A stretch of 32,151 bases of DNA from Ginkgo biloba (lineage: Eukaryota; Plantae; Ginkgophyta): the NCBI GenBank assembly GCA_024626585.2, contig JANKJI020000004.1:168445460-168477610 (forward strand), written 5' to 3'. Position numbers and translations under genes: made by a program. Position 1 is the first letter of the stretch. Every line of letters begins with the position of its first letter. Below the pieces are notes generated by a model. The model was not told the origin of the DNA. It was given only the letters and a program-made list of their open reading frames with translations, and ran no database searches. Positions 1 to 24,315 of the stretch are shown here, in pieces.

Positions 1-720
1 TAAAGGCAAATAATAAGTTACTTCAATTTGCCTTCAGCGTATTTTTGAAGCTAGAAAATAGGGCATTTTATTAATGACTTCCCTTCGCTGGCATCCTCAA
101 GAAAGTCCTTAATGGCTAAAGCAACAAATGTGGCTAAATATGCTACAATTGGTAATTCTAATAGGGAACATGTAAATTGCATTAGTTCTAAAGTATGCTT
201 GTCCTTTACTCCTTCTATTTCTTTATTTTTGCTAGGGTTTTGATGATATCCCATAGTGTGTTGAAGAATACAAATGCATAATGGTTAGGCAAGGTGAATT
301 TTTTTGCTTCCTATGTATCCCATTTAGAACGAGTTAAAAAGAAATTGACTATCTTGAATGTTAAGGATCTTTCTCCAGGAGGAAGAATATAGATTGTAGA
401 TAAAGTCCTTTCTCCTATCCATGCATATTTTCCCTCTTTTTCCAGCGTTAAAACTTAGTGTATATGGAGTTAATAACTCTGTTTAGGAACTTCCTTTACA
501 CTGGGTCCTCTAATCGAAGCTTACTTCCTAAGGTGAACGGGGCATTTGTTGGGCCATTTGTTGTGCTAAGTGAGAAGAAGGTGGTCTTGGTATCATAGAT
601 ATCAAAATGCAGGAGTGGCCCTTGCATATAAATGGTTTGTTAGGGCTCTTATTGGGGATAATGCATGGTAGATTCTAGTAGGTTTTAAAATCTTTCAAGG
701 CTATTAATTAATAATTACCA
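1..720 (+). mobile_element. Degenerate L1-type LINE ORF2 fragment (region C-terminal of the RT core)
   Basis: Manual translation gives LSPGGRI*IVDKVLSPIHAYF (~370-432) and WAICCAK*EEGGLGIIDIKMQ...LAYKWFVRAL (~550-650). These match the plant LINE motifs LSxxGRxxLIxxVLxxIPxY and WxxxCxPKxEGGLGI. Many stops and frameshifts; boundaries approximate. Confidence 0.8.
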
Positions 721-1719
721 GTTAGAAGGCGGTTACATGGAGCAAGAGCAGGATAGTTTTATAGCAACGTCCGCTCCATAATTTTAAGAGTATCTAGCGG
801 AATTCTTCTTAAAATTCTACTCACATGAAAAAAAATTACATCAAGAAACAAATTCAAATGGACACAAAAAATAAAAGATAAAAAAATAAAAGAAATGAGA
901 CTACACATCTGTGCAGATGTCAGCACAAATCAACTAAACTATAAGAAAAAAATTCAACGCCCTTGTTGTAGGAAGTTGGCACTGTTATTCAATTTATGTG
1001 GTCGCTCTTAATTTTTAAAAAAATTAAACAATAACAAGAAAAAAAATATTAATGTGACCGTTTGCTAGGATATTCTCAGATTTTTTTTTCGTGTATCCTA
1101 CTGCACGGAACCACGCTTTTAGAATGCGGTCCCATGGACCAGGAAACATGATTAAATTGGATTCGGATATCCTGGAAAAGAGGTCACATGCATTTTCTGA
1201 ATTCCTGTTGTCGCTGAACTTCCCCCAAANNNNNNNNNNNNNNNNNNNNNNNNNNNNNNNNNNNNNNNNNNNNNNNNNNNNNNNNNNNNNNNNNNNNNNN
1301 NNNNNNNNNNNNNNNNNNNNNNNNNNNNNNNNNNNNNNNNNNNNNNNNNNNNNNNNNNNNNNNNNNNNNNNNNNNNNNNNNNNNNNNNNNNNNNNNNNNN
1401 NNNNNNNNNNNNNNNNNNNNNNNNNNNNNNNNNNNNNNNNNNNNNNNNNNNNNNNNNNNNNNNNNNNNNNNNTGAGGAGCGGTGGGGGCAATTCCATTTC
1501 CTGGTTCCTGCTCCATGGGACCGCCCTTTTATTGTCTCCGCAAGTTTCCGCCTCTGAACGTTCTTGTGAAACACAAAACCAACCGAACGCTCTAACGAAC
1601 TCTTTTCATCTAAACATCTTAATTTCTTCCTTTTATGTCAAAGCAATGCCATTTCATCCTCCTCTTATTCATTTTTTGGTCTCCGCATGCAACATTGCAA
1701 CGGCTTGGAGTGATCCAGG

Positions 1720-2244
1720 ATGATCCAAAGACCTTCCAGGGGCATTAGTCCGTCACGTTTGGCCAAAGATTTAACAGCCACTAAAGATTCTGATAGCTGC
1801 AGGAACAAATCAGAAATAAAATCCGCCAAGCAACTGGAATGCAGGCATTCACGAGCAGTCGAGAAGCTTCTTTGGCACGAGATTTGTTCTGTTTTACAAG
1901 CACAGGAAATAGATGCGGTGAAGGAGGCAATTGGAAACACTGTGGTAGAAGATAATGAAATTTTGTTCAGAGAAATTTTAGCGCTGGAAGATATATTGGT
2001 TTCTGTCAACAATAGCACCCAAAAACATCTTCAGTCAGTCCCACGAATTAACGAGAAGCAAAAACCTAATCAAATTTCTAGGGTTTTTAAAAGCTTAGAT
2101 GGTTTAGTCCATTCCTCTTCCAAAGTATCCAAACCAGATTCTGAAATCATTACATCGCCTAAAAAATTGCAGTCTAAAGATCAATTGCTGGGCAAAAAGG
2201 ATTCAAAAGAGCGGCCTTCTACTCCAGACTCTAGCGCAAGAAAA
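1720..2244 (+). CDS. CCDC24-like exon 1, 5' part (ATG to frameshift)
   Basis: ORF 1720..2322 starts at ATG in a CpG-rich segment and contains the N-terminal CCDC24-like helical block. After ...TPDSSARK the plausible reading frame shifts. Confidence 0.7.
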
Positions 2245-2672
2245 GCTCTCCTCTTCGGAAACTGTCTACACCAGACAGTAGTACGAATAAAAACCCTCGA
2301 CAAAGAAACGGGCTTGCGTTAAACGAAAGTCGAAAACCAACGGTAAAAATCGCAGAACAGTCCAGTAAGAGAGACGGTTTGACAATTGGATTGAATCCCG
2401 AAGAGGGTAATGAAAAAACCTGTCCAGATAGCAGGCCTTCAACTTCCAATGAGTCAACCCAATGGGAATTACATTATCCTCTGATAAACCTAACAGAAAT
2501 GACTGCATCCATCTCTATTTCTGGCGACCAAATTCGCGATAAGGTTGGTTCGAGTAAACCGTTGGCATTGGTCCCCGTTTGTCCTAATTTCGACCCTTGT
2601 TTGTTAGTGCAAGAGGTGAAACCGCAGCTGAATGTGTTCGACATTGATGAAGTTAAAGAAAATCTAAGGAAA
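2244..2672 (+). CDS. CCDC24-like exon 1, 3' part (shifted frame)
   Basis: This frame is open from 2235 to TAA at 2673-2675 and reads SSPLRKLSTPDSSTNKNPRQRNG...LVQEVKPQLNVFDIDEVKENLRK. It repeats the STPDSS motif seen just upstream in the first frame. Confidence 0.65.
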
Positions 2673-2675
2673 TAA

Positions 2676-3252
2676 TTTGACATGAACGACCTTGGCCTAA
2701 TGAATTAATATCTTGGCATCGAAGTGTGGCAAAAGGATAATGGAATATTTATTTCTCAAAGTAGATATGCAAAAGATTTACCCAAAATATTTCATATGGA
2801 AGATTATAAAATCTCACCTATTCTTATGGAAATAGGAATACAATTGACTATAGATGATTGAACAAATTTAGTTGATAATACTCTATATAGACAACTGGTC
2901 AGAAGTCTCATATACCTAATCGATACAAGACTAGATATAGACTATTCAGTTGGAAAAGTTGTAAGGTATATGACTACTCCAAGACAAACACATTGGATAG
3001 TAGAAAAAAAAAATTTAAGATATATAAAAGGTACATTAGATAATAAAATTTGGTATATAGGTACATGAATAGGTACAGATACAGGTATAAGTGTAGGTAT
3101 AGGTACAGGTTTAACTAGATATATAGATGCAAATTAGGCAGGTTCTTTGGAAGACATGAAATCTACTACAGGATACATGTTTCACTTGGGATCAGGTGCA
3201 GTATCATGGTGCAGTAAAAAGCAACATACTATTGCTTTATCTTCAACAGAAT
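2676..3252 (+). mobile_element. Ty1/copia pol fragment: RT C-terminal half and start of RNase H
   Basis: One frame reads FDMNDLGLMN*YLGIEVWQKDNGIFISQSRYAKDL...LYRQLVRSLIYLIDTRLDIDYSV...HWIVEKKNLRYIKGT...YIDAN*AGSLEDMKSTTGYMFHLGSGAVSWCSKKQHTIALSSTE. These are canonical copia RT and RNase H motifs, with in-frame stops. Confidence 0.95.
3053..3110 (+). repeat. Degenerate 6-bp tandem repeat (ATAGGT/ACAGGT) inside the copia fragment
   Basis: tataggtacatgaataggtacagatacaggtataagtgtaggtataggtacaggt lies between the RT end and the RNase H start and preserves the frame. Confidence 0.75.
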
Positions 3253-3564
3253 NNNNNNNNNNNNNNNNNNNNNNNNNNNNNNNNNNNNNNNNNNNNNNNN
3301 NNNNNNNNNNNNNNNNNNNNNNNNNNNNNNNNNNNNNNNNNNNNNNNNNNNNNNNNNNNNNNNNNNNNNNNNNNNNNNNNNNNNNNNNNNNNNNNNNNNN
3401 NNNNNNNNNNNNNTATCGGTATGCTATCATTTTGGGTTTGACCAAAAATTCAAAAAATAAATCCTCTATTGTAAAGTCCCTAACTTCCTCCACACTAAAT
3501 ATTTTTCGATGGTTCTTAAGACAAACACTAATAAGACTATTTATATGTGTAGTTACCTGCACAG

Positions 3565-3617
3565 TTCATACTCCAGAGACCATAGAAGTGTCTTCATCTG
3601 ATGATATTCTTCAGCAG
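3565..3617 (+). CDS. Possible small internal exon (HTPETIEVSSSDDILQQ)
   Basis: ctgcacAG acceptor and CAG|GT donor. It ends in phase 0, compatible with the exon at 3951. The donor is weak and no homology was recognised. Confidence 0.25.
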
Positions 3618-3950
3618 GTCCTGGATTAACTTATAGTATTGAATGATGCTAGACACAGTAGTCGAGAGAAAGTTGTGCTTCATCCATAGCGTTCCTCCCT
3701 CATTTTACCTCTAGATGCCTCTGTTACCATACAGTTGTCTGTCTATATTATATTTTGTTGTTTCAAGCTTTAGGAGCTTTTAGATTCATTATCAGATATG
3801 CTGTAGGCACTCCCCAGTTATATACTATATGTTTTCTTAGTCGTGTTGACTGTTTTTGGTCATTTGTGGATATACATATAATTTCATATCATTTAGTCCA
3901 AAGAAGATTGATGGGAACTTCATCCTTTTTTCATGATGTCTGAACTTCAG

Positions 3951-4763
3951 GTCACAAATACTCCAAGAACTTTGGCCCAACATCAGGATCTTCACAAATT
4001 AGATTCAGAAGTCAACCAGAGAATTCCATCTCTTCGAGTAGCAAAAGATTTTGTAAAGAGGCCAGTAGAGAAGGTGCAATCATTGCTTGTAGCAGTACCC
4101 AATTCTGACAAAAAAACAGAAGAGAGATGGCAGCCAACTTTGGTTTCGGAGAATGTTCCAAGACAACTGCCTTACGTAGCATCAAAAGATGTTGCAAAGA
4201 TGTCAGAGGAGAATGTGGTTCATACACCTTTTCATACAATACAGGACGCAATAAAAAAGCCAGAGGAAAAGATACAAGATATGATTAAATCATCAGAGGA
4301 AAAGGTACAGTCCACTTTTCTGTCTGCAAATGTTCAGAGACCATCATCTCCTCGAGCAACAAAGGATTCAATGAAAAGATCACCAGAAAAAAAAGGCCAC
4401 AGCGTTCTGCTTTCTCAAAATATTCAAAGATCAATGCCATCTGCCCTAGCAGCAGAGGATGTCAGAAAATGGCCAGAAGAAAAGAAGGCACAGCAGACCA
4501 CTTTGCTCTCTCAATTAAATGCCCACAGAACTTCATCTTCCATAGCAGTAAAGGATTGTATAAGGAGGCCAGAAGAGAAGTTGCAGACCACTTTGCTTCA
4601 CCGAACAAATCAAAGATTGTTGTCTCCTCAATTACCTACAAGACAAATCAAGGATAGACCTAAGCAGATGACCTGTGTAAATGAAGCAGCTGGAAGCCTT
4701 CCCACTAAAAGCTTAAGAACAAAGATTTCAGCTCCTTCAGTGATAAGGAGGACTAACACTTGA
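3951..4763 (+). CDS. Terminal exon encoding a K/S/Q/E-rich region with ~30-aa imperfect repeats; probably the last exon of the CCDC24-like gene
   Basis: 813-nt uninterrupted frame after a pyrimidine-rich stretch and ttcAG (3949-3950), ending at TGA 4761-4763 and followed by T-rich 3'UTR-like sequence. Repeated motif KDxx(K/R)RPEEKxQ(S/T)TLLSxNxQR. Confidence 0.75.
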   Translation, partial: VTNTPRTLAQHQDLHKLDSEVNQRIPSLRVAKDFVKRPVEKVQSLLVAVPNSDKKTEERWQPTLVSENVPRQLPYVASKDVAKMSEENVVHTPFHTIQDAIKKPEEKIQDMIKSSEEKVQSTFLSANVQRPSSPRATKDSMKRSPEKKGHSVLLSQNIQRSMPSALAAEDVRKWPEEKKAQQTTLLSQLNAHRTSSSIAVKDCIRRPEEKLQTTLLHRTNQRLLSPQLPTRQIKDRPKQMTCVNEAAGSLPTKSLRTKISAPSVIRRTNT

Positions 4764-5039
4764 AGAGCACGATGTTAGTTGCTGTTTTCAGTTGGGATCT
4801 ATTTGTTTGCCTGTTCTTGTTTGTACATTAGACTTGAGTAATTACCTTTCCTCCTCTTCATATTCTTTGTTTTTCATGGGCACAAATGAAGTCCTTTGAC
4901 TTATATGCACTTTGTTCAATGTTGATCAATGTAAAATTTCGTCCTCTATTGGGCCTTCCTAAGATGCCCTTACAAGAAATTTATCAATCCCTGATGGTCT
5001 TGCAGTAATTCATGCACAATAGGTAACTGAGATGCCTTT

Positions 5040-5555
5040 TTTACTTCTCTCTACATAGTCGAGGTCCCATATTGATGTGGGATGGGTCGACCATCGGCCA
5101 GATCCAACTTTTGTCGGGCATAGCGAGATTGCCGTGTGTCGATCACTCAATTCTAGGTCGATCGACGACAGGGAAAATCGACGCCGATGCAGTCTGCCTT
5201 CCAAGATCTCAGTGATAGCCTTGGCCGATGATGTCAGCAAACAACTCTATCGGGTTGACGCAGGCTATCTGTCGGTTAGCTCACCAACATACACACAGAC
5301 ACGATTCTCAAAATAATTAGCTTGGGCAACGATGAACTCGAAAATTGAATGACTCTACACAGGACTTGATACTAGTAATTTTGCAATGCACAAAGAAAGT
5401 GTACATAAGACAATGTCTCGAAATCACATCAAAGAGAATGACATGGTCCCTTTAACTGGAGAAACCCTCATGGGGAATAAAACTCTAGGTACATCAAAGA
5501 AGCAGCCAAATTACACATCATGCTTTTACAATAGCCTCAGCGACCCAATTGACAT
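5040..5555. mobile_element. LTR-like / repeat-derived CpG-rich segment
   Basis: Abrupt TCGA/CCGA-rich composition similar in style to the LTR-like insert at 13670. No credible protein; it ends at a large gap. Confidence 0.35.
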
Positions 5556-6737
5556 NNNNNNNNNNNNNNNNNNNNNNNNNNNNNNNNNNNNNNNNNNNNN
5601 NNNNNNNNNNNNNNNNNNNNNNNNNNNNNNNNNNNNNNNNNNNNNNNNNNNNNNNNNNNNNNNNNNNNNNNNNNNNNNNNNNNNNNNNNNNNNNNNNNNN
5701 NNNNNNNNNNNNNNNNNNNNNNNNNNNNNNNNNNNNNNNNNNNNNNNNNNNNNNNNNNNNNNNNNNNNNNNNNNNNNNNNNNNNNNNNNNNNNNNNNNNN
5801 NNNNNNNNNNNNNNNNNNNNNNNNNNNNNNNNNNNNNNNNNNNNNNNNNNNNNNNNNNNNNNNNNNNNNNNNNNNNNNNNNNNNNNNNNNNNNNNNNNNN
5901 NNNNNNNNNNNNNNNNNNNNNNNNNNNNNNNNNNNNNNNNNNNNNNNNNNNNNNNNNNNNNNNNNNNNNNNNNNNNNNNNNNNNNNNNNNNNNNNNNNNN
6001 NNNNNNNNNNNNNNNNNNNNNNNNNNNNNNNNNNNNNNNNNNNNNNNNNNNNNNNNNNNNNNNNNNCATGTGTTTTCTGCCAATAACTAAAGATATTTCA
6101 TGTGAAAAACAATAAGCATCCAAATGGTTAATTGGAAAAGAGATTGAGGTAATTGTTTTTGGACAGAATTTTGTCTAGTGTGTGTAGTGTTGAATCATGT
6201 TCATCTAAGCAGACCTGTCATATCCCATTTTCACAATGAATGGAACAATTATGTGTTGAAATTTAGTTTGGGTCCCTTTCTAAAGACGAACCCCCCAAAA
6301 TGCATCCCATTTCATTGTAAAAACTGCAAAGTTAAGGCTTTCAATAAGCCTTGTTTTTCACTGTAAGAGAATTTGTTTTTAATTTCTTTGAGGCTAAGTG
6401 AAGGATTCACAATTGGTACTAGACACTGGTTACAACAGGAAGGGACAGCATCAGCAGAGTCTGCTACTCTTGCTCTCAGTTGGAACTGTCATTCAGCTTT
6501 CATTTGAGTAGTATATTAGATTTGAGAATCCATGTATGCGGCTTCATTTTCTACTTAGTGTTGTAGTTGTTTTCCAGATAAAACTCAATCAGTTAAACAA
6601 AGCTGCACAATTGGTAGCAATGTTCATGTTATTGTTCAAGGGAACAAAAGTTGTGTTACATGCGGTTCCTTGCAAAAACAACATGAAGGTTCTCCGTTCT
6701 TTAGATTCTTGGAATTATTTTCTTGGGGTCGTTTGTG

Positions 6738-7400
6738 CATAGGGTGTATCGGAATTGTGTAAAGAGTGACAGGAGTTTTAAACCTAATTGTGGGCATCTT
6801 GAACATAAAAATGTCCTTTCATTAAGAACTCAACATGTTGGGTTTGAATCTGTGAGTATTGTTTCTGCAACAGTTTGTGGAAAGAGTTTGGATTCCAAAG
6901 AAATCTACAGATTGCATCCCCTTGTACCCAAGAGGTTGTGCAACATAAATTATACATCCACTTCCCAATTGCTTACCAGTGAAGTAATTGCTTCTGCTTG
7001 GATACGTACAGTCGCCACTGATAGTTGAAGCATGGCATCGTAGGCAGTTCTCTATGGTCTTTAATCATAGGGTGAATTGGAATTGTGTAAAGAGTGACAG
7101 GAGTGTTAAACTGAATAGTGCTTTTCACATTCATCATATTTCTTGACCAGAAAAATGTTCTTTCATTAAGAACTCAACGTTTTGGGTTTAAATCATTGAG
7201 TGTTCTTTCTGCAACAGTTTGTGGGATGCGTTTGGCTTCCAAGGAGTTCACACAAATGGCATCCCATTGTACTGAAGAGATGTGCAACACATTCTTTGTG
7301 CACTTCTCATTTGCTTTCCAGTGCAAGTAATCGGTTCTGCTTGGACATCTAAAGATGCCTTAGATAATTGGAGATAATTGGAGCATGGTATCTAAGACAA
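6738..7400. repeat. Diverged direct tandem duplication, period ~328 bp (copies start 6738 and 7066)
   Basis: Shared blocks catagggtg..ggaattgtgtaaagagtgacaggagt, aaaaatgt(c/t)ctttcattaagaactcaac, ttctgcaacagtttgtgg and ttctgcttgga occur in both copies. Confidence 0.9.
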
Positions 7401-9274
7401 TAGGTCAGGTATCTATACAGTCAGAGGGGAGCAGGTCAACTTCCTACTGTTATAAGAAATGGAAAGTGCATATGTTTTGATGATGCACAAGTTTAGACGT
7501 TAAGGACCTTTTAGGCATTGGAGAAAAATTTAACTTGGTATGGTTAACAGTAGACCTTTTTTGGTAAAAGTTTTCTACTTTAACCTAAGCATGGGAATAT
7601 CCAATGAAACGAACCACCATAAGTACCTGGTGGTTGATTCAACATGAAGGTCATTACCAGTCTATTATATGTTTGCTTAGATGAGGGAGGGAGGGGCTTC
7701 TTGATTTTCTCTGTAGGAACTGTGAAGAAATTGTAGGATCTGATATGCTACCAAGAGGAATTTGCCATCCTATGGGGTGCAGATTTTTCCTACTGCTGGC
7801 CGTCAGGAGGAAATTTAGAAAATGTTGTTGTGTTAGGAAACATTTAGGAATAACAGGAATTCAAGGAATTGTGNNNNNNNNNNNNNNNNAAACTATAGCT
7901 GCTAAGGCTAGCCTCACTGTCCAGTAGTTGCTTTAAAGGATCATCCTAAAGAGTAGCTGCTCCTTGTTTTTGGTACAAGATTTTATTTTTCCAGGTAGCT
8001 CCCTCTTTGTATATCCACTTGACCATGAATCCATGAAATTTTGCAGTTTAGCTCTGATGTTGGGGGCATGTTCTTGTTTTGACAACTATCATGATGTGAT
8101 TGTATTCACACATCGNNNNNNNNNNNNNNNNNNNNNNNNNNNNNNNNNNNNNNNNNNNNNNNNNNNNNNNNNNNNNNNNNNNNNNATGCTAGTTAAGGAC
8201 AAGACTGCCCTTTGGTGGTCACAGTGTATGCATTGCAGGATCTCATCTTATATGTGGAAGCAGATTGCTGAGCATCAAGTTAACCATTGAATCTAAAGGC
8301 CATAGAGTTATGCTCATGAGTCATGACTCATATCCTAAAGGATACCCATGTGACTATGGTTGAACTGGAATCTAGCAAATATCATAAGAGTAATATGGAT
8401 TATCTTGGTGATCGACCTCATTTTGCAACCATACTTTTCTAAAAGTCATTTTGGCATGCACATCATTTTCGACAATAATGAGTTAGTTTTAGTTAATTGG
8501 CAGTTAGGCTTTTTGCAAAGAACAAATATAGGAAGATGAAAAGGGTAGGTGCATATTCAGGGAACAGAATTGGCTTTCTGTACAAACTCTCTTAAAGGAA
8601 GCTTGTGCAGTTCTGAGGATAGCCAGAAGTTGGCAAGAGTGTGGTATACATGCCCTTGTAACAAACTAAATTGCACTGGGAAGAAGAGACTGGAAAAAGA
8701 AGCATATGACTTGCCAATATGAGGTGATGTAAACTTGTTTCCAAGATTAATGAATGGAAATCTGGTTAGGAATTTCCTGGTTCTAAATTTATTTTTTATC
8801 ATCATTCTGTTCAATGCATATGAATGGCACTCTAATTGTCCGCATGCCGTTTGTTTTGTTTTTCTGCACGAAAACACACTCAATGCACTCAATTGGCAAA
8901 TCAATCTGATATCTGAGTAGATTTACCCTGAGAACATCCTAAAAGCAGTTATGGATTAGACAACATAACTTGGAAGCAGGAGGATGTATGGGAGATATAC
9001 TCCTCTGCCAGAAACTAGTAGAAAAAAAGATGATCCACTGCAATAAGAATTTTTGCAACTAGGGAAAAACCAGGAGAAGTGACTAAAGAACATGCACAAA
9101 GAACACTTGACAGTAGAATGGATTAGCTGGAAGACTGTGCACCAATTTTAGGCACAGATGTAGGGTTAAATGGATTAATTGCTCAATGCAATGTGATGTT
9201 GGTCAACTGAGTATCCGCATTAACACACCAATGTCATTTGTGGTTGGCTTGACCACACCTTCACAAAATATTAC

Positions 9275-9640
9275 CCTCAAGGGTGGAAATCAAGCCCTTT
9301 GATGGTTCTTCAGTGCATGGATTCAACATTCGAGGTATACTTGTCCTGCTGCAGGTATACTGAGTTACAAGAAATAATCTTTGCAATACTAGAAATGGTA
9401 GAAAGTGCAGTTATATGCCCGAAGAGATTTTGTCAAAGATAACAACAAAGTTGATTGCCCNNNNNNNNNNNNNNNNNAAAGAAGTTTTATTCAATGGGAT
9501 ACGAGAATGAGTTGTATGCCTATTGGTGCAACTTAGGCAAAATGTTGGTCAGTAGGTTCAAGAATACACCCATGAATTTCATAAGCTCACCATAAAGTTG
9601 AATGTGCATGAAGATGGGAATGAATTGATCTTGAAGCACA
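9275..9640 (+). mobile_element. Degenerate Ty3/gypsy gag (retrotransposon gag domain) fragment
   Basis: Frameshifted translation gives RVEIKPFDG..AWIQ..EVYLSCCRYTELQEIIFAILEM...KKFYSMGYENELY...QLRQNVGQ*VQEYT.NFHKLTIKLNVHE, containing the gag QxxxQxVxEY motif. Confidence 0.75.
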
Positions 9641-11499
9641 GTCACAATCTTCACCTCAATCACAAAATTTCAACTATTACCTTAACCACCTTTATCATTG
9701 CAATGGCATTCTATTATTAACGACAAATGTGCGGCACATTTATGATCACAACAGATGATTGTCCTTAGCAGAAACGATGATATTGAAGCACATAATCACT
9801 CAAAATCCATCTCTCCTCTGTGTTGCTTGCAACCTAATTTTTACTTTGTTGATCACTATAACNNNNNNNNNNNNNNNNNNNNNNNNNNNNNNNNNNNNNN
9901 NNNNNNNNNNNNNNNNNNNNNNNNNNNNNNNNNNNNNNNNNNNNNNNNNNNNNNNNNNNNNNGGGAACCTACCTTATCGCTCTTGTATATTTCATGATTA
10001 TCATCTTTGTGATCGATCAACCACTCGACCACATCAAGGGAGCACCTAACAATGAGTGATTTTTTGTTATAACCCATCGCCATCTCCGTAGCCAAGGTTC
10101 CTCATAACTAGGTCATGTGCTTTACCTAGTAGACTAGTTGATTCTCTCCTAGTGGCCTAGATACTCATTCATTGTTACTCAGGTTCATCTCCCTCTAAAA
10201 ATCTGGCGAGGTCTTAGAAATGAAACAAAAAGTTGACTAACAACGGGTCTCAAGAGTCGAGCCCACCATCAACAATAAGTTTGTATATTCATGAGGATAT
10301 AGCATGCATTAATTGTAGAGAAAACATCATAAATGTAGTGCAAGGACATTGAGATAAAATATTTGGGGTACAATCCTCACTTATTACTTCATTTAATGAT
10401 GATACATAGTAATATATCTCAAGGGNNNNNNNNNNNNNNNNNNNNNNNNNNNNNNNNNNCTACACACTTATGCTCAACTTTCACATTTTGGAACTCATTT
10501 CTCTCTCTTATTTATACTTTATTTGGCCTCATAAATGCCAAATGACATAACCTTAATTTTAAACGTTGCAACCCTAAAGGTGTCACTTCATTTAATGCCA
10601 TGAAATACATCATTTAATATCCTCAATTATTATGCCCTAAATATCTTCATAAATGCTCCTTCGTTCCTACATTAGATGTGGATTATGTTGCCTCATTAAG
10701 TGTTATACTACACAACCAATCTGTACAAAACTATAAAAATAGGTGTATGGACATCTGTGTAGATTGTTTGTTCATGTCATACAAAGAGTCCATACAATGG
10801 CACAGATGCCTAGTGTTGGTATGTGTTAGATTTTGTCTAGGCTTTGTCTAGATTCTATTCAGATTGCATCTAGATTCCTTTAGAATTGATTTAGATTCCT
10901 TACCTACTATTGATGCCATTGTTTTGTTACAACCAAATCATAACTATTGATGTCATTGTTTTGTTACTACCACATCATTATTTTGTTGTTGTATCATGTT
11001 ATTAGCATATTACTATAGTCATTATTAGGGTGCATATGTCATGTTTTCACATCATGGATTAATGTCATGTCATCTTTTGATCATGTGTCATCACTCGAGC
11101 AAGATGAGCAAAAGCTTTTGAAGGTGCTTTTGTATTGGGCGAAAGTAACTGAGTATTAGCTCAACCCCTTAACCATGAACAATTTTGAGCCTCCTTTCAT
11201 ATGCAACTTCTATCAATACTTGAAGGAAAATATGGCATTGCCCTCATCATGATTGTTGTCAAGTTCGCTCTTGCCTTGTTAGGGGTAATGATTGGTCATC
11301 GTGAGTGATAAAGTGGATGTTACCTACTTGTTTTTTGTGCTTTTTAGATTTTTATGGTTTTCATCATTTTCAATTTTTTTTTTATGGATTTATAACTCTC
11401 TTTCATCTTTTTATGGATTTTAGTATAATTACTTGATTGCCACTACTACCATATTGTAGCATGCATATAATACAAGGACCTTGCTGCAAAGGTGATTTA

Positions 11500-16830: not shown

Positions 16831-17870
16831 TAACACAGGAAAAGTCTAGGATGAACCATCCTAGAAAATTAATCTTTTCAAAGAAAGATTGAATCCCTTT
16901 ATTTCTAGTTGGTAATGGAATCTATTTAATGGATATGATCCTAACGAGGTTGATGTATGTTCCTTCTTTGGAAATAATATGTCCAAGCATCTTTCCTTGA
17001 GTTACTCCAAAGACTAATTTCTTTGGGTTCAGGGAGATGCCACATTCTTTATACATATAAAAACCCTACTTTAAATGCATCCCATGATCATGGAAATTCT
17101 TAGAGAAAATGGTGAGGTCATTCAGGTATACCACCACTTTTCTCCTTATCAACTCTTTGAAAGCTAAATCAATTGCCCTCTAAAAAGTAGCACTCGCATT
17201 GATCAGACTGAATGGCATCCACTTGTAGGTGAAAGTTCCTCAAATAGTGATGAGGGTGGTATTATGTTTGTCTTCCTCCACAACCAGGATTTAATTGTAT
17301 CCTAAGAAGCCATCCAATAGAGATATCTTATATGATCTAGTCATAGACTATAATAATTTTTCTATCCAAGGCAAAGTATAATTATCCTTTAGGGATTCTT
17401 TGTTCAAATTTATATAATTAATAGAAAGCCTTATATATCCATTTTTTTTCTAATTGGGACCATATTTTCCACCCAAGAAGAATGTCATATGGTAAAAATA
17501 ATCTCTCATAGATATTTTGGATCTCATGCCACATTATATCTTTGTTCTTGGGATTGATAGCCATTTTATTTTGTCTAAAAGGATTTGTACCAGATTTAAA
17601 GGGAATGCTATGTTGGATAACATTGGGATTGAACACTCTTAGTCCATCAGAGTCCTAAAGATAAGATGTCAACATTATTCTTTCTTAAAAAAAAAAAAAA
17701 ATTTACACTTCTTCTTCTTTGGTGCAACATTCTCCCAGGAGGATAATCTTTAGGTAGGATTTTTCTCTTAGATTGTGTTGCTTGAAATTTTGGATAACAC
17801 ACTTGGAGGATTCATTTTGAGAAGGTCCTAGTTTATAAGAGTCATGAGTATTGAACAAATATTTAAGCAA
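16831..17870 (-). mobile_element. Degenerate Ty3/gypsy reverse transcriptase
   Basis: The minus strand reads IILLGECCTKEEE..FNPNVIQHSIP..WVENMVPIRKK..LNKESLKDNYTLP..SLLDGFLGYN*I..GTFTYKWMPFSLINASATF*RAIDLAF..VVVYLNDLTIFS (YLDD changed to YLND)..LNPKKLVFGVTQGKMLGHIISKEG. Confidence 0.95.
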
Positions 17871-17874
17871 AATT

Positions 17875-18044
17875 AAAATATTTAGGATGGCACAACAGTT
17901 GGGACTTTCTTTGGATGATGCACAGCGCGTCCAGCTCAAGAAGATACACCAATTGGACAAATTTTGGCAAGAAGTAGCGCAGCGGATGAAGTTGGTTCAA
18001 GAACAGAGAAAACAATGGCATGATAAGCACCTGCGAATCAAGGA
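17875..18044 (+). mobile_element. Ty3/gypsy integrase C-terminal fragment
   Basis: FRMAQQLGLSLDDAQRVQLKKIHQLDKFWQEVAQRMKLVQEQRKQWHDKHLRIK matches the post-core integrase helix with the QRKxWHD motif. It corresponds to ~11700-11870 on the minus strand. Confidence 0.8.
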
Positions 18045-21845: not shown

Positions 21846-22828
21846 ATAATGTGTATAGTAAAAACAATTTTAGAATTGTTAAATTTTGGCATTCATAAGT
21901 TGTAATTACATATAAAAGATTACTTTTATCACATAAAAGAAAATGACATGTATTGCAGAGCTTTGGATCAATATATAAAATTATGTCAACAAATTATGAT
22001 CTTAAAAAATTAACATGAGAATGCTTCTTCTAATTAAAAAATATTGAAATAGTTTACATATATAAGACCCCATTTTGGCACCTTTTGTTGTAGCACGAAA
22101 TACCTTTGTATTCCAAATCATGTGGAAATACTTAAGTCTTATAAAAATCTCTTCTAATGGAGAGAAAAAATCCCAAGGAAAGTATCATTAATCAATGACA
22201 GTCCATTTGACAGTGTTTAATGTTTTCTTAAACAGAGTTCTATTAACCAACATTTCCTATAATAATTATAAGGAATCTTTTAAATGGACATTCCATCATA
22301 ATAATTGTTGCCCCCGTGAAGTTTCAAATGTACTTATGTCACACTTAAGATAAATAAAGAGATTAGGTGGGAGAAAAAAGGTGAATATAAGATGAGACAT
22401 CATAATAGAAATGTGACCAATTTTTGCATCTTAAATCATCATCCTTCACTTCTATTATCATGTCATGAGGGAGAGGACCTTGGGCATAAGATTATATTGA
22501 TTTGATTAGATTAAAAATCAAGTCAATTAATATATTTTTCAGATAATTTCAAAAGAAAACATAGATCCAAGTGTCAAGTTGGCAAAGGCCTTGGGGCTTA
22601 AAATTTCATCCACATTAAAAAGCTAGGAAAATGTACTGACCACATACCAAAATTTCCACAAGGAAATATACAGTGCCTTCAGTAAAGACCAAAATACATG
22701 TGACCTCCTCCTCTGTGTTTTACAAGCATTTGAGTTTCTTTCTCATTAAAAAAAAATTCTTGAATAGAACACAGAGATGCTCATACTTGGCATTGAAATG
22801 CTCTGGACAGAAATACGGTAGCAAAAAC

Positions 22829-23111
22829 ATGGCTTATGCAAAGGCTTCTGTGCAGGATCTCATCACAAATTTAATCATATTCATGTGTGCTCTTCTTCCA
22901 TTAGTTATGGGAATGACTGAAGAGCCAAAAGTGCCTGCACTGTTCATATTCGGAAACTCTTTGGTGGACGGTGGCACCAACAACTACATTCCCCACAGTT
23001 CTGCTNNNNNNNNNNNNNNNNNNNNNNNNNNNNNNNNNNNNTATGGAGAAACCTTTTTCCATTTTCCAACCGGTCGATTCACAGATGGGCGCACTGTATT
23101 TGATTTCATAG
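22829..23111 (+). CDS. GDSL lipase exon 1
   Basis: MAYAKASVQDLITNLIIFMCALLPLVMG..VPALFIFGNSLVDGG..YGETFFHFPTGRFTDGRTVFDFI; donor G|GTAATT; contains a 36-N gap. Confidence 0.9.
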
Positions 23112-23194
23112 GTAATTATTCCTCCAATTTCATGAATAATATCAGACTGCATCTAATCTCTATCATATGACATATTTTTATTTAACAAATACAG

Positions 23195-23313
23195 CTAATC
23201 TATTGGGAATGCCATTCCCACCTCCGTTTCTCAAGCCTGGAGCAAATTTCTCCCATGGTTCAAATTTCGCATCAGGAGGAAGCGGATTGTTGGATTCCAC
23301 AGGCAAACAATGG
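23195..23313 (+). CDS. GDSL lipase exon 2
   Basis: tacAG acceptor; (A)NLLGMPFPPPFLKPGANFSHGSNFASGGSGLLDSTGKQW; donor GTACTG. Confidence 0.9.
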
Positions 23314-23409
23314 GTACTGTAACTCATGAAAATCATTATAATATATACTTTGATACTTGCCATGATTTTTTTCAAAAGCTCAGATCTGTTCGCCACTGTG
23401 ATTATGCAG

Positions 23410-23640
23410 AATATCATTCCATTCAGTCATCAAATAGAGCAATTTATGAAATTCTCTTATATTCTGACAAAAAATCATGGAATTAAGGCTTTAAAATGCT
23501 TGTTAGAGGAGTCCATCTTTGGAATCAGCACAGGTGCCAATGATGTTGGCTATTACTTTACCAATGCTACATTGAGGAAATCTGTGATGCCTCAGGATTT
23601 CATCAAAATGTTGCTCAGTCGGTACAGGAAATACTTAACA
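23410..23640 (+). CDS. GDSL lipase exon 3
   Basis: tgcAG acceptor; NIIPFSHQIEQF..SIFGISTGANDVGYY..YRKYLT; donor GTATGT. Confidence 0.9.
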
Positions 23641-23721
23641 GTATGTATATACACCACAGTCCCTTAAATCTGTACATTTTTTTTTAATGAAATTATTATA
23701 ATTTCAGTTGTGATGGTGCAG

Positions 23722-23958
23722 AGACTTTACCATGGGGGTGCAAGGAAGGTAATAGTGTTGGATATTCCACCTGTGGGCTGCACTCCGGGCTCTAGGCTTT
23801 TGGGTTTAGCCATTTCAAGAGGTGGGTGCTTTGAATCTGCTAACCAGATGGCCGTGGCTTACAATGCTAAGCTGAAGCAGATGCTGCACAGTCTTAACAG
23901 GAATCTCACAGGGGCAGTGTTTTTGTACTGAATATAATTGAGTATGGCAAGGTATTTG
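23722..23958 (+). CDS. GDSL lipase exon 4 (frameshifted near its 3' end)
   Basis: tgcAG acceptor; RLYHGGARKVIVLDIPPVGCTP..YNAKLKQML..GAVFLY then TGA. The shifted frame reads NIIEYGKVFG up to G|GTAGGC. Confidence 0.85.
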
Positions 23959-24064
23959 GTAGGCACAGATTATGTTTCTCATTTAGCCTTTTTTTTTTTT
24001 TTCAAAGTTATTTATTGGGTTGATTTAATGCTTTGCAGAGATTCATATAATGATTTGTGTTCAG

Positions 24065-24315
24065 GATTTAGTGATACAACATCTGCATGTTGTGGAGCCG
24101 GAGCCTTCAACGCAGTAGTGGACTGTGGGAGGGGAAAGAGTGGGAGGAACAAACCATTTCTCTGCAAGAAGCCAAACCGATATTTGTTTTGGGATAGAAC
24201 TCACCCCACTGAACGAGTCCATCATCTGGTTGCCGATGAGATTTGGAGTGGTAATCCTTCATTCATTTTTCCATTCAACCTTACAACCTTAATTCAATCA
24301 CAATCACAACATTAG
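24065..24315 (+). CDS. GDSL lipase exon 5
   Basis: ttcAG acceptor; (G)FSDTTSACCGAGAFN..CKKPNRYLFWDRTHPTE..IWSG..FPFNLTTLI..TAG. Confidence 0.92.

Follow-up and report, generated by a model that had tools for sequence, protein, structure and literature searches.

A transcribed CCDC24/IDA3-type gene in Ginkgo biloba whose damaged appearance is probably due to genome assembly

Does the CCDC24-like coding sequence in the genome of Ginkgo biloba belong to a molecular relic, or to a working gene that appears broken in the assembly? The question is raised by a 32-kb stretch of G. biloba DNA (32,151 nucleotides; hereafter the window), to which all coordinates refer. The features described lie on the + strand, apart from the unstranded assembly gap. 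A first-pass annotation recognized two conserved blocks there and read the locus as a candidate decayed remnant of the flagellated-sperm gene set, citing a frameshift, a fusion to a copia element and a missing coiled coil.

The two blocks and the S/K/P-rich linker between them are present as that annotation described: the peptide LLWHEICSVLQAQEIDAVKEAIGNTVVEDNEILFREILALEDIL lies inside the open reading frame at 1720–2322, and the frame that is open from 2235 to 2675 has QLNVFDIDEVKENLRK at its end. The N-terminal block (RHSRAVEKLLWHEIC...ALEDILVSVNN; 1843–2013) matches the Pfam CCDC24 family (PF15669) at profile positions 2–55 (20.2 bits, E 6e-4), scores 89 bits against a profile of green-lineage members, and contains six residues (Trp52, Glu63, Gly72, Asn79, Leu82, and Glu85) that are invariant in an alignment of 16 sequences. 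The low-complexity linker (2014–2585) follows; relatives also have a linker in this position, though its length varies. The second block (NFDPCLLVQEVKPQLNVFDIDEVKE; 2586–2662) matches PF15669 at profile positions 123–151 (18.5 and 17.6 bits, E 2e-3). In the family profile, the first block reads LLW..I...L.P.E..EVK..IG..L.EENE.LF.EA.AL.DIL over positions of about 1–60, and the second LN..DID.V...LR. Each PF15669 match is singly below the gathering score of 27 bits; simply added together, the two give about 38.7 bits. When only block 1 is used to choose the relatives for a profile, that profile recovers block 2 at 22.8 bits (E 4e-6 among 1,572 six-frame pieces). Because the PF15669 matches are collinear and block 2 is recovered independently, the resemblance is beyond chance.

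An exhaustive search of 1.84 billion (1.84e9) protein representatives yielded 15 matches with E <1e-3 (best 2e-6), the top one being from Volvox and laid out in the same way. PF15669 is the best family in all 10 of the top relatives that were scanned, eight of which, at 28.7 to 144 bits, exceed the 27-bit cut-off; among the short fragments in this group, one of 99 residues, counted with the eight, is at or just above the cut-off and one of 151 residues is below it (22.2 bits). One of the five relatives outside the Pfam scan is labelled as CCDC24 family by its source. The named relatives come from Volvox, Selaginella, Myrmecia, Haematococcus, Pterosperma, Cymbomonas, and Florenciella, all of which are flagellated organisms, and none comes from an angiosperm. 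Judged by these sequence matches, the CCDC24/IDA3 family has a genuine plant member in this gene, as the first-pass annotation had proposed, and the conditional premise of that annotation that the family tracks flagellated lineages is borne out by the flagellated stages of every named relative and by the ciliary transport role of IDA3 (PMC5896928). The exhaustive search returned no close orthologue because the collection seems to be without the Ginkgo gene. Other searches added little: an exact look-up of ORF A and ORF C found neither recorded, a word-index search with ORF A returned nothing among the proteins of 110–350 residues that it covered, and a protein atlas gave no usable match. A profile search with alignment A2 gave only four prasinophyte-like matches; because low-complexity words dominated its 8,000 scored candidates, it is uninformative on distribution.

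Expression and gene structure were assessed from three runs, namely poly-A reads (X24) and two RNA-like contig sets (X4 and X8). All three carry an extra G at 2239/2240 (3 of 3 reads in X24, and the contig in each of X8 and X4). This G after 2239 joins the frame that begins at 1720 to the 2235–2675 frame and thereby closes the frameshift. A frame change is thus present in the window, but its repair by an A at 2241–2244, as was first suggested, is rejected by the RNA. The X4 contig matches 1561–2662, including the exon 1 coding part (1720–2662), with zero other letters and one gap.

The transcripts exit the window at 2662, pass through 97 letters that are absent from it, and re-enter at 3951, in phase with the open reading frame at 3933–4763. 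The loose ends at 2662 are concordant between X24 and X8, and a single contig of 2,450 bases spans 1561–2662, the 97 letters, and 3951–4837. The first 24 of these letters match nothing in the window even with up to three mismatches. After block 2 the mRNA encodes KLRDAFASEH, 13 unread residues, LDKSTELYSS, and VTNTPRTLAQHQDL, with spacing and flanks that match those of Selaginella and of L001, a land-plant homologue (protein P0003, Logan contig SRR33208241_12396). L001 has the same exon structure, with a long exon 1 whose donor follows ALTSER, a 69-base exon 2 (coiled coil), and an exon 3 that starts from VKNAPPT; because this layout matches, the 97 letters are divided into 28 that end exon 1 and 69 that form exon 2. 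The true exon 1 accordingly extends 28 bases beyond 2662 (..KLRDAFASEH). The continuation of the domain (coiled coil, LLEDVEYLQ.LLE.E ... PP..EL..Y..KL at PF15669 profile positions 152–190) is indeed absent from all six frames of the 32-kb window, as had been noted, but the 97 letters probably encode it, given the matched spacing and flanks around the 13 central residues.

The other side of the break at 2662 is repetitive. The last 20 bases before it (2643–2662) are common to the gene exon and to copia reverse transcriptase (RT) copies and form the point at which the window switches from gene to repeat. In high-copy contigs of the DNA run X5 the match starts no earlier than 2643, and the loose ends on the upstream side read LLITGNNNDR. 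From 2643 on, the letters of the second block are common to copia copies, and the real mRNA reads IDEVKEKLRDAFASEH rather than IDEVKENLRK followed by a stop. A degenerate copia-type fragment (RT end and beyond; 2663–3252) contains five stop codons and matches RVT_2 weakly (profile positions 203–235, E 0.019); it has a depth of 4e4 to 1e5 in X5 DNA and of about 0 in RNA. The copia fusion is thus present in the window but is skipped by the mRNA. At the join, the copia sequence is internal to RT and shows no LTR end; it terminates in an assembly gap of Ns (3253–3413), which lies outside both conserved blocks. In X5 the left flank of this gap is high-copy copia (depth about 1e5) and the right flank is low-copy (depth about 70); the two sides therefore do not form one continuous element. 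A 160-residue 'ORF' at 3147–3629 spans the gap and is composed of X's. The missing pieces, namely the 28-base end of exon 1, the whole of intron 1, exon 2 with its 69 bases, and the beginning of intron 2, must be located in the gap or have been lost at the 2662 join.

Downstream of the gap, low-copy intron sequence (3414–3950) has an RNA depth of about 0, as does the whole of 2663–3868, and ends in a pyrimidine tract and an acceptor AG (3949–3950). The last coding exon (3951–4763; contigs 3951–4837 and 3951–4860) comprises 270 codons and a stop at 4761–4763. It starts with the domain tail VTNTPRTLAQHQDL, the Selaginella counterpart of which is VKNNPPTINDMKDC, and continues with about six loose repeats, each with K-[RK]-P-E-E-K-x-Q at its centre; the C-terminal 270 residues have no family match in Pfam. 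The 5′ untranslated region (1561–1719; contigs start at 1561 in X4 and at 1598 in X8) includes a short upstream in-frame ORF (1687–1713). An upstream exon at 1127–1229 / 1473–1531 was considered and rejected, as the RNA-like contigs there are about 95% identical and represent a dispersed repeat. The 3′ untranslated region (4764–4860) is defined by transcript contigs, one of which exits at 4837, immediately 5′ of a GT, which suggests an optional intron. The RNA-like contigs of many studies contain the gene, a distribution apparently wider than expected for a sperm-only gene.

The transcript reading frame has 617 codons, 13 of them unread, and no stop, and the CCDC24 domain occupies residues ~37–371, followed by a lineage-specific C-terminal part. 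The N-terminal ~370 residues of the predicted protein would thus hold the two conserved blocks split by the low-complexity linker and then a short coiled coil, and the C-terminal ~250 residues would consist of lineage-specific loose repeats. Family membership, exon structure, expression as poly-A RNA, and the absence of all three apparent lesions from the RNA are established directly. The locus is probably (at roughly 0.8) a transcribed, intact CCDC24/IDA3-type gene with at least three coding exons and ~617 residues, the damage in the window having arisen in assembly. Under this interpretation the damaged look would be due to a very fragmented short-read assembly, in which one base was lost and the sequence jumped from the exon into high-copy copia via the 20 shared bases, the jump being bounded at its far side by the N gap. 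For the 2662 join, the artefact interpretation is drawn from RNA only; in the approximately 37% of X5 that was read, no DNA contigs of other individuals were seen over 1755–2509 or over this join.

The same lesions might instead constitute a real null allele in the sequenced individual, generated by the one-base deletion and by loss of the sequence between a pair of 20-base repeats (in exon 1 and in copia sequence in intron 2), with the gene intact and expressed in other individuals. The 20-base identity is a microhomology of the type used by real deletions, and such a deletion would produce precisely the structure of the window. Moreover, run X1 alone contains all sampled words of the frameshift version of the window, and 19 other runs (12 studies) miss about 3% of these words; if X1 is ordinary Illumina DNA, the individual would appear to carry the one-base deletion as a real allele. 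However, X1 may be the assembly's own sample. A null allele also places two independent lesions on a haplotype whose remaining differences from the transcripts amount to no more than one base in 2 kb, a pattern typical of assembly error and not of decay, and its repeat piece terminates in an N gap within an assembly that is gapped every 1.2 kb (25 N gaps in the window; contigs of ~1.2 kb). We consider this explanation unlikely. Far less credence is given to the window as a decayed paralogue, that is, a true relic, with the RNA derived from an intact copy at another locus. Recent duplicates are numerous in large plant genomes, and the contigs are silent on their locus of origin, but the transcripts match the window's own 5′ untranslated region, exon 1, exon 3, and 3′ untranslated region with 0 to 1 other letters in ~2 kb and use the window's own acceptor at 3950, and a pseudogene that dated back to flagellum loss would have diverged. 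Because the transcripts show an intact gene, an outcome that the first-pass annotation had itself named as refuting the relic reading, free in three runs of the frameshift, the copia fusion and the loss of the coiled coil, the relic interpretation falls.

Doubts about the identity or the origin of the DNA carry still less weight. The single Pfam matches are sub-threshold, and bark-dwelling green algae are among the best named relatives, which could be taken to mean that the similarity to CCDC24 arose by chance or from low complexity, or that the DNA is algal contamination. These readings are contradicted by the collinear blocks, by the six invariant columns, by the independent recovery of block 2, by the exon GC content of 41%, by a plant copia element and a plant GDSL lipase gene in the same scaffold region, by the occurrence of the stretch in 20 runs of 13 studies, and by the exon structure held in common with L001. 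The relatives, the alignment, the independent block 2, and the RNA effectively refute both, which we regard as having a negligible probability. A search of the whole window against Rfam gave no match.

With the intact-gene interpretation preferred, the function of the product can be considered. The family is not as poorly characterized as had been assumed, as Chlamydomonas IDA3 is a CCDC24-domain intraflagellar transport (IFT) adapter for I1 inner-arm dynein (PMC5896928). By homology, we infer an IDA3-type adapter role for the Ginkgo protein, which would act in the cytoplasm and growing flagellum of the male gamete and would couple pre-assembled I1/f inner-arm dynein with anterograde IFT trains, without being an axonemal component itself. 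This assignment leans on one characterized distant relative, with 26–49% identity over the conserved blocks and unrelated C-terminal halves. The I1 heavy chains DHC1 and DHC10 are reported from every land plant with flagellated sperm, and the intermediate chains IC138 and IC140 were not found in Ginkgo (PMC9237703); the Ginkgo cargo complex may be incomplete or may equally be mis-assembled. The first of the two alternatives originally offered, a sperm or basal-body gene, is favoured by the data. An alternative in which the locus is an intact, spliced, and poly-adenylated IDA3/CCDC24 gene of a conifer or gnetophyte, seed plants that lack flagellated sperm, and the adapter works outside a flagellum, is improbable, as all named organisms with the family are flagellated.

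Conservation of IDA3 beyond green algae has been described as poor (PMC5896928; bioRxiv 10.1101/2021.10.31.466660). The Ginkgo locus, together with Selaginella and L001, indicates that land plants have retained the CCDC24/IDA3 domain, down to its exon structure, and provides a concrete candidate for I1 dynein delivery to the many flagella of plant sperm. In this fragmented giant-genome assembly, three separate signs of 'decay' in one gene were disproved by RNA. Flagellar genes have been reported as missing or fragmentary, e.g., radial-spoke genes, and IC138 and IC140 in Ginkgo (PMC9023351, PMC9237703), and such losses warrant a read-level check before they are interpreted as loss.

Chlamydomonas reinhardtii IDA3 (Cre03.g205000; Hunter et al., 2018; PMC5896928) and the Ginkgo protein both have an N-terminal PF15669 domain and a long, poorly conserved C-terminal part. 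In a comparison with IDA3 by its description, the two differ in size (~115 kDa versus ~617 residues), and their C-terminal halves have nothing detectable in common. The uncharacterized Selaginella moellendorffii proteins LOC112340592 and LOC112349767 (XP_024515062.1, XP_024540558.1) are 43% identical in the N block and have the same second block. The Selaginella and Ginkgo proteins also have an equal 13-residue spacing from AEH to L-x-x-S-T-x-x-Y-S-S, followed by V-x-N-x-P-x-T, but the Selaginella protein, with 353 residues, is without the K-R-P-E-E-K-x-Q repeat tail. Animal CCDC24, the seed family of PF15669, has the same two-block domain, is matched collinearly by the pieces in the window, and is far more distant; its function is uncharacterized in the literature found. 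Human CCDC24 has ~300 residues. L001 has an N block 42% identical to that of Ginkgo and, unlike the Ginkgo gene, is GC-rich, with short introns and a short C-terminal tail. Its neighbour gene has the plant domain DUF674.

The locus is a previously uncharacterised land-plant member of the known CCDC24 family, probably displayed in mis-assembled form. As assembled, the window (GC content 34%) contains an open frame on the forward strand at 1720–2322 (ORF A), which includes LLWHEICSVLQAQEIDAVKEAIGNTVVEDNEILFREILALEDIL, and a second open frame at 2235–2675 (+), which terminates in QLNVFDIDEVKENLRK and a stop codon; the two overlap at about 2232–2245. The first-pass annotation described two conserved blocks separated by an S/K/P-rich linker, and these are present in ORF A and the second frame. 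From 2676, in the frame of the latter, follows the terminal part of a reverse transcriptase of copia type (FDMNDLGLMN, stop, YLGIEVWQKDNGIFISQSRYAKDL) with five stop codons and a weak RVT_2 match (profile 203–235). An N gap (3253–3413), which lies outside both conserved blocks, comes after this piece, and a 276-codon ORF (3933–4763, +) lies further along.

The assignment to CCDC24 is upheld by several lines of evidence. ORF A residues 65–118 match positions 2–55 of the Pfam CCDC24 profile (PF15669) with 20.2 bits (E 6e-4), and the second frame's final 29 residues match positions 123–151 with 18.5 bits (E 2e-3); the two matches are collinear but below the gathering score of 27 bits. When ORF A was run with phmmer exhaustively against 1.84 billion cluster representatives, 15 proteins fell below E 1e-3 (best 2e-6), and PF15669 is the best family for all of the first ten matches, eight of which exceed the 27-bit cut-off (28.7 to 144 bits), while a 151-residue fragment falls under it (22.2 bits). 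The relatives, which are only 26–49% identical to the window protein within the blocks, share with ORF A the invariant columns W52, E63, G72, N79, L82 and E85. A home-made profile built from these relatives, with the window's own row left out, scores ORF A at 89 bits and the second block at 22.8 bits (E 4e-6 in a set of 1,572 six-frame pieces); the latter score is an independent test because the members of the profile were picked by ORF A alone. The same search, covering both strands of the window, finds no continuation of the domain elsewhere. The coiled coil expected after block 2 is therefore absent from the assembly, as had been claimed, but is probably encoded by exon 2 of the mRNA.

RNA and DNA were compared with the window over 1000–5500, using raw reads of a poly-A RNA-seq run (X24), two RNA-like contig sets (X8 and X4, the latter bearing a different organism label) and a set of DNA contigs (X5). 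All three RNA sets have an extra G behind 2239 (three of three X24 reads and a single contig each in X8 and X4), which unites the 1720 frame with the second frame, reading SSARKSSPLRKLSTPDSS. The RNA agrees with the window as far as 2662 and then diverges, with an identical loose end in X24 and X8 (GCTTCGAGACGCGTTTGCATCAGA), and RNA depth is about zero across 2663–3868. One X4 contig of 2,450 bases runs from 1561 to 2662, continues with 97 letters, the first 24 of which have no match in the window with up to three mismatches tolerated, and resumes at 3951–4837. Position 3951 is immediately preceded by a pyrimidine tract and AG, and opens a codon that is in frame with ORF 3933–4763 (VTNTPRTLAQHQDL). 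The frameshift and the copia fusion, which had been taken as damage, are thus both missing from the transcripts, and the interpretation of the locus as a decayed relic is refuted on its own terms by intact mRNA; the underlying observation was largely right.

The 97-letter insert divides into 28 + 69: the first 28 letters finish KLRDAFASEH (the first 30 of the 97 read (K)LRDAFASEH), and the 69 end in LDKSTELYSS, read by the last 30. A land-plant homologue (L001; Logan contig SRR33208241_12396), adjoined by a gene with the plant domain DUF674, has the same layout: exon 1 terminates in ALTSER, directly followed by gtaatg, the next exon consists of 69 bases encoding AVLLEDVAYLRDCLERSTELYSC, and the third opens with VKNAPPTLGELRDC. 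Selaginella has the 13-residue spacing of the window's mRNA, with RLRHAFAAEH, then DALLEDVECLRSY, then LEDSTDVYSSVKNNPPT. From the 28 + 69 split and these layouts it follows that 28 bases at the 3′ end of exon 1 are missing from the window, together with intron 1, the whole of exon 2, which probably encodes the absent coiled coil, and the first part of intron 2. A local frame-check string composed of window pieces, the G, 60 printed letters and 37 N has 617 codons (13 of them unread) without a stop, and scores 118.8 bits against the home-made profile, covering positions 7–255. The C-terminal tail carries about six K-[RK]-P-E-E-K-x-Q repeats. Coding differences between samples (2138, 2234, 4272) all change amino acids, in the linker or repeats; three are too few for any claim of constraint. 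In the 5′UTR, an upstream ORF (1687–1713, +; MQHCNGLE-stop) lies in the frame of the main start codon, two codons ahead of it, with further upstream ATGs at 1636 and 1648. In the 3′UTR, X4 record 5 departs from the window at 4837, directly ahead of GT, with 363 additional letters, and an X8 contig continues uninterrupted to 4860, which suggests an optional intron at 4837/4838.

High-copy copia contigs in X5 (depth 4e4 to 1e5) agree with the window only from 2643 on, and upstream read LLITGNNNDR, the usual copia context. Because RNA matches up to 2662, the 20 bases 2643–2662 (ATTGATGAAGTTAAAGAAAA) are common to the exon and copia reverse transcriptase copies; the switch from gene to copia occurs within them, and the peptide IDEVKE(K/N)LR is compatible with both proteins. 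The junction lies in an internal reverse transcriptase region, with no LTR end, and the copia piece stops at the N gap, past which copy number is low (depth about 70), so that what lies to either side of the gap does not form one element. The assembly contigs average 1.2 kb, and N gaps interrupt the 32-kb window 25 times; the most parsimonious explanation is that a repeat was wrongly entered during gap filling. The sequenced individual is unlikely to hold a real null allele, with a one-base deletion and a deletion at the join, even though one run (X1) contains 100% of sampled words from 1720–2675, so that its own contigs include the no-G version, whereas 19 other runs from 12 studies contain 97%, a shortfall that fits lost words across 2239 and perhaps across 2662. 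If X1 is ordinary short-read DNA, the one-base deletion could be a private or heterozygous allele, and the join could likewise be a true deletion between two 20-base repeats. However, X1 may be the sample behind the window's assembly, and two lesions on a haplotype otherwise at most one base off the transcripts in 2 kb look like assembly error. Across 1755–2509, no DNA contig was found in the roughly 37% of X5 that was covered. The case warns that fragmented giant-genome assemblies can mimic gene decay. Eleven of the 25 gaps are exactly 100 N, splitting the window into blocks of 1–10 kb, and the remainder are of estimated size. A gap of exactly 100 N usually denotes an unknown distance, as when blocks are placed with the help of a reference or a map. 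The order and adjacency of the blocks are provisional; the CCDC24 gene sits inside the single block 1–9862.

In Chlamydomonas, the PF15669 domain occupies the N-terminal quarter of IDA3, the C-terminal half of which is unconserved beyond green algae; IDA3 is not axonemal but enters growing cilia together with I1 dynein by anterograde IFT, and in ida3 mutants I1 is pre-assembled but import fails (PMC5896928). By homology to IDA3, the gene product probably serves the plant's sperm flagella as an IFT adapter for I1 dynein; its function would reside in the conserved N-terminal domain, and the repeat tail is lineage-specific. DHC1 and DHC10, the heavy chains of I1, persist in land plants with flagellated sperm; conifers and angiosperms lack dynein heavy chains altogether (PMC9237703), and much of the flagellar gene set is retained in Cycas and Ginkgo (PMC9023351). 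The named source organisms of the relatives (Volvox africanus, Selaginella moellendorffii, Myrmecia bisecta, Haematococcus lacustris, Pterosperma, Cymbomonas and Florenciella) all have flagellated stages, and angiosperms are absent from the named phmmer matches in a library rich in their proteomes. The low GC and the copia load would suit a large genome of gymnosperm type. Of the possible hosts for an intact IDA3 homologue, a plant with flagellated sperm is much the most probable, and one without such sperm is improbable. The locus carries the range of IDA3/CCDC24 into land plants, where the exon structure is conserved. Two ENA metagenome contigs (L002, 1135–2185, and L003) carry a GC-rich algal-type CCDC24/IDA3 gene with short introns, adjoining a SAP-domain gene and called as separate pieces; prokaryote-style gene calls therefore break up this family in protein libraries.

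The window is plant DNA. A gene for a plant GDSL esterase/lipase lies at 22673–24315 (+), with at least three exons (FIFGNSLVDGGTNNY; GETFFHFPTGRFTDGRT; CCGAGAFNAVVDCG; LFWDRTHPTE). Its last exon matches Pfam Lipase_GDSL (22.6 bits), and a 36-N gap (23006–23041) breaks one exon. The segments 1127–1229 and 1473–1531, which flank the gap 1230–1472, are about 95% matched by RNA-like contigs and bridged by 266–301 letters; with a DNA depth of 200–570 they are a transcribed dispersed repeat and were rejected as a CCDC24 exon. An ORF fragment at 17851–18044 (+; QEVAQRMKLVQEQRKQWHDKHLRIK), ending in a 100-N gap, is presumably similar to a Ty3/gypsy polyprotein tail. The very short stretch 5451–5494 has a summed X5 depth of about 4e5 with hundreds of loose ends on either side, also occurs in RNA contigs, and resembles a very small dispersed element of high copy number, or the margin of such an element.
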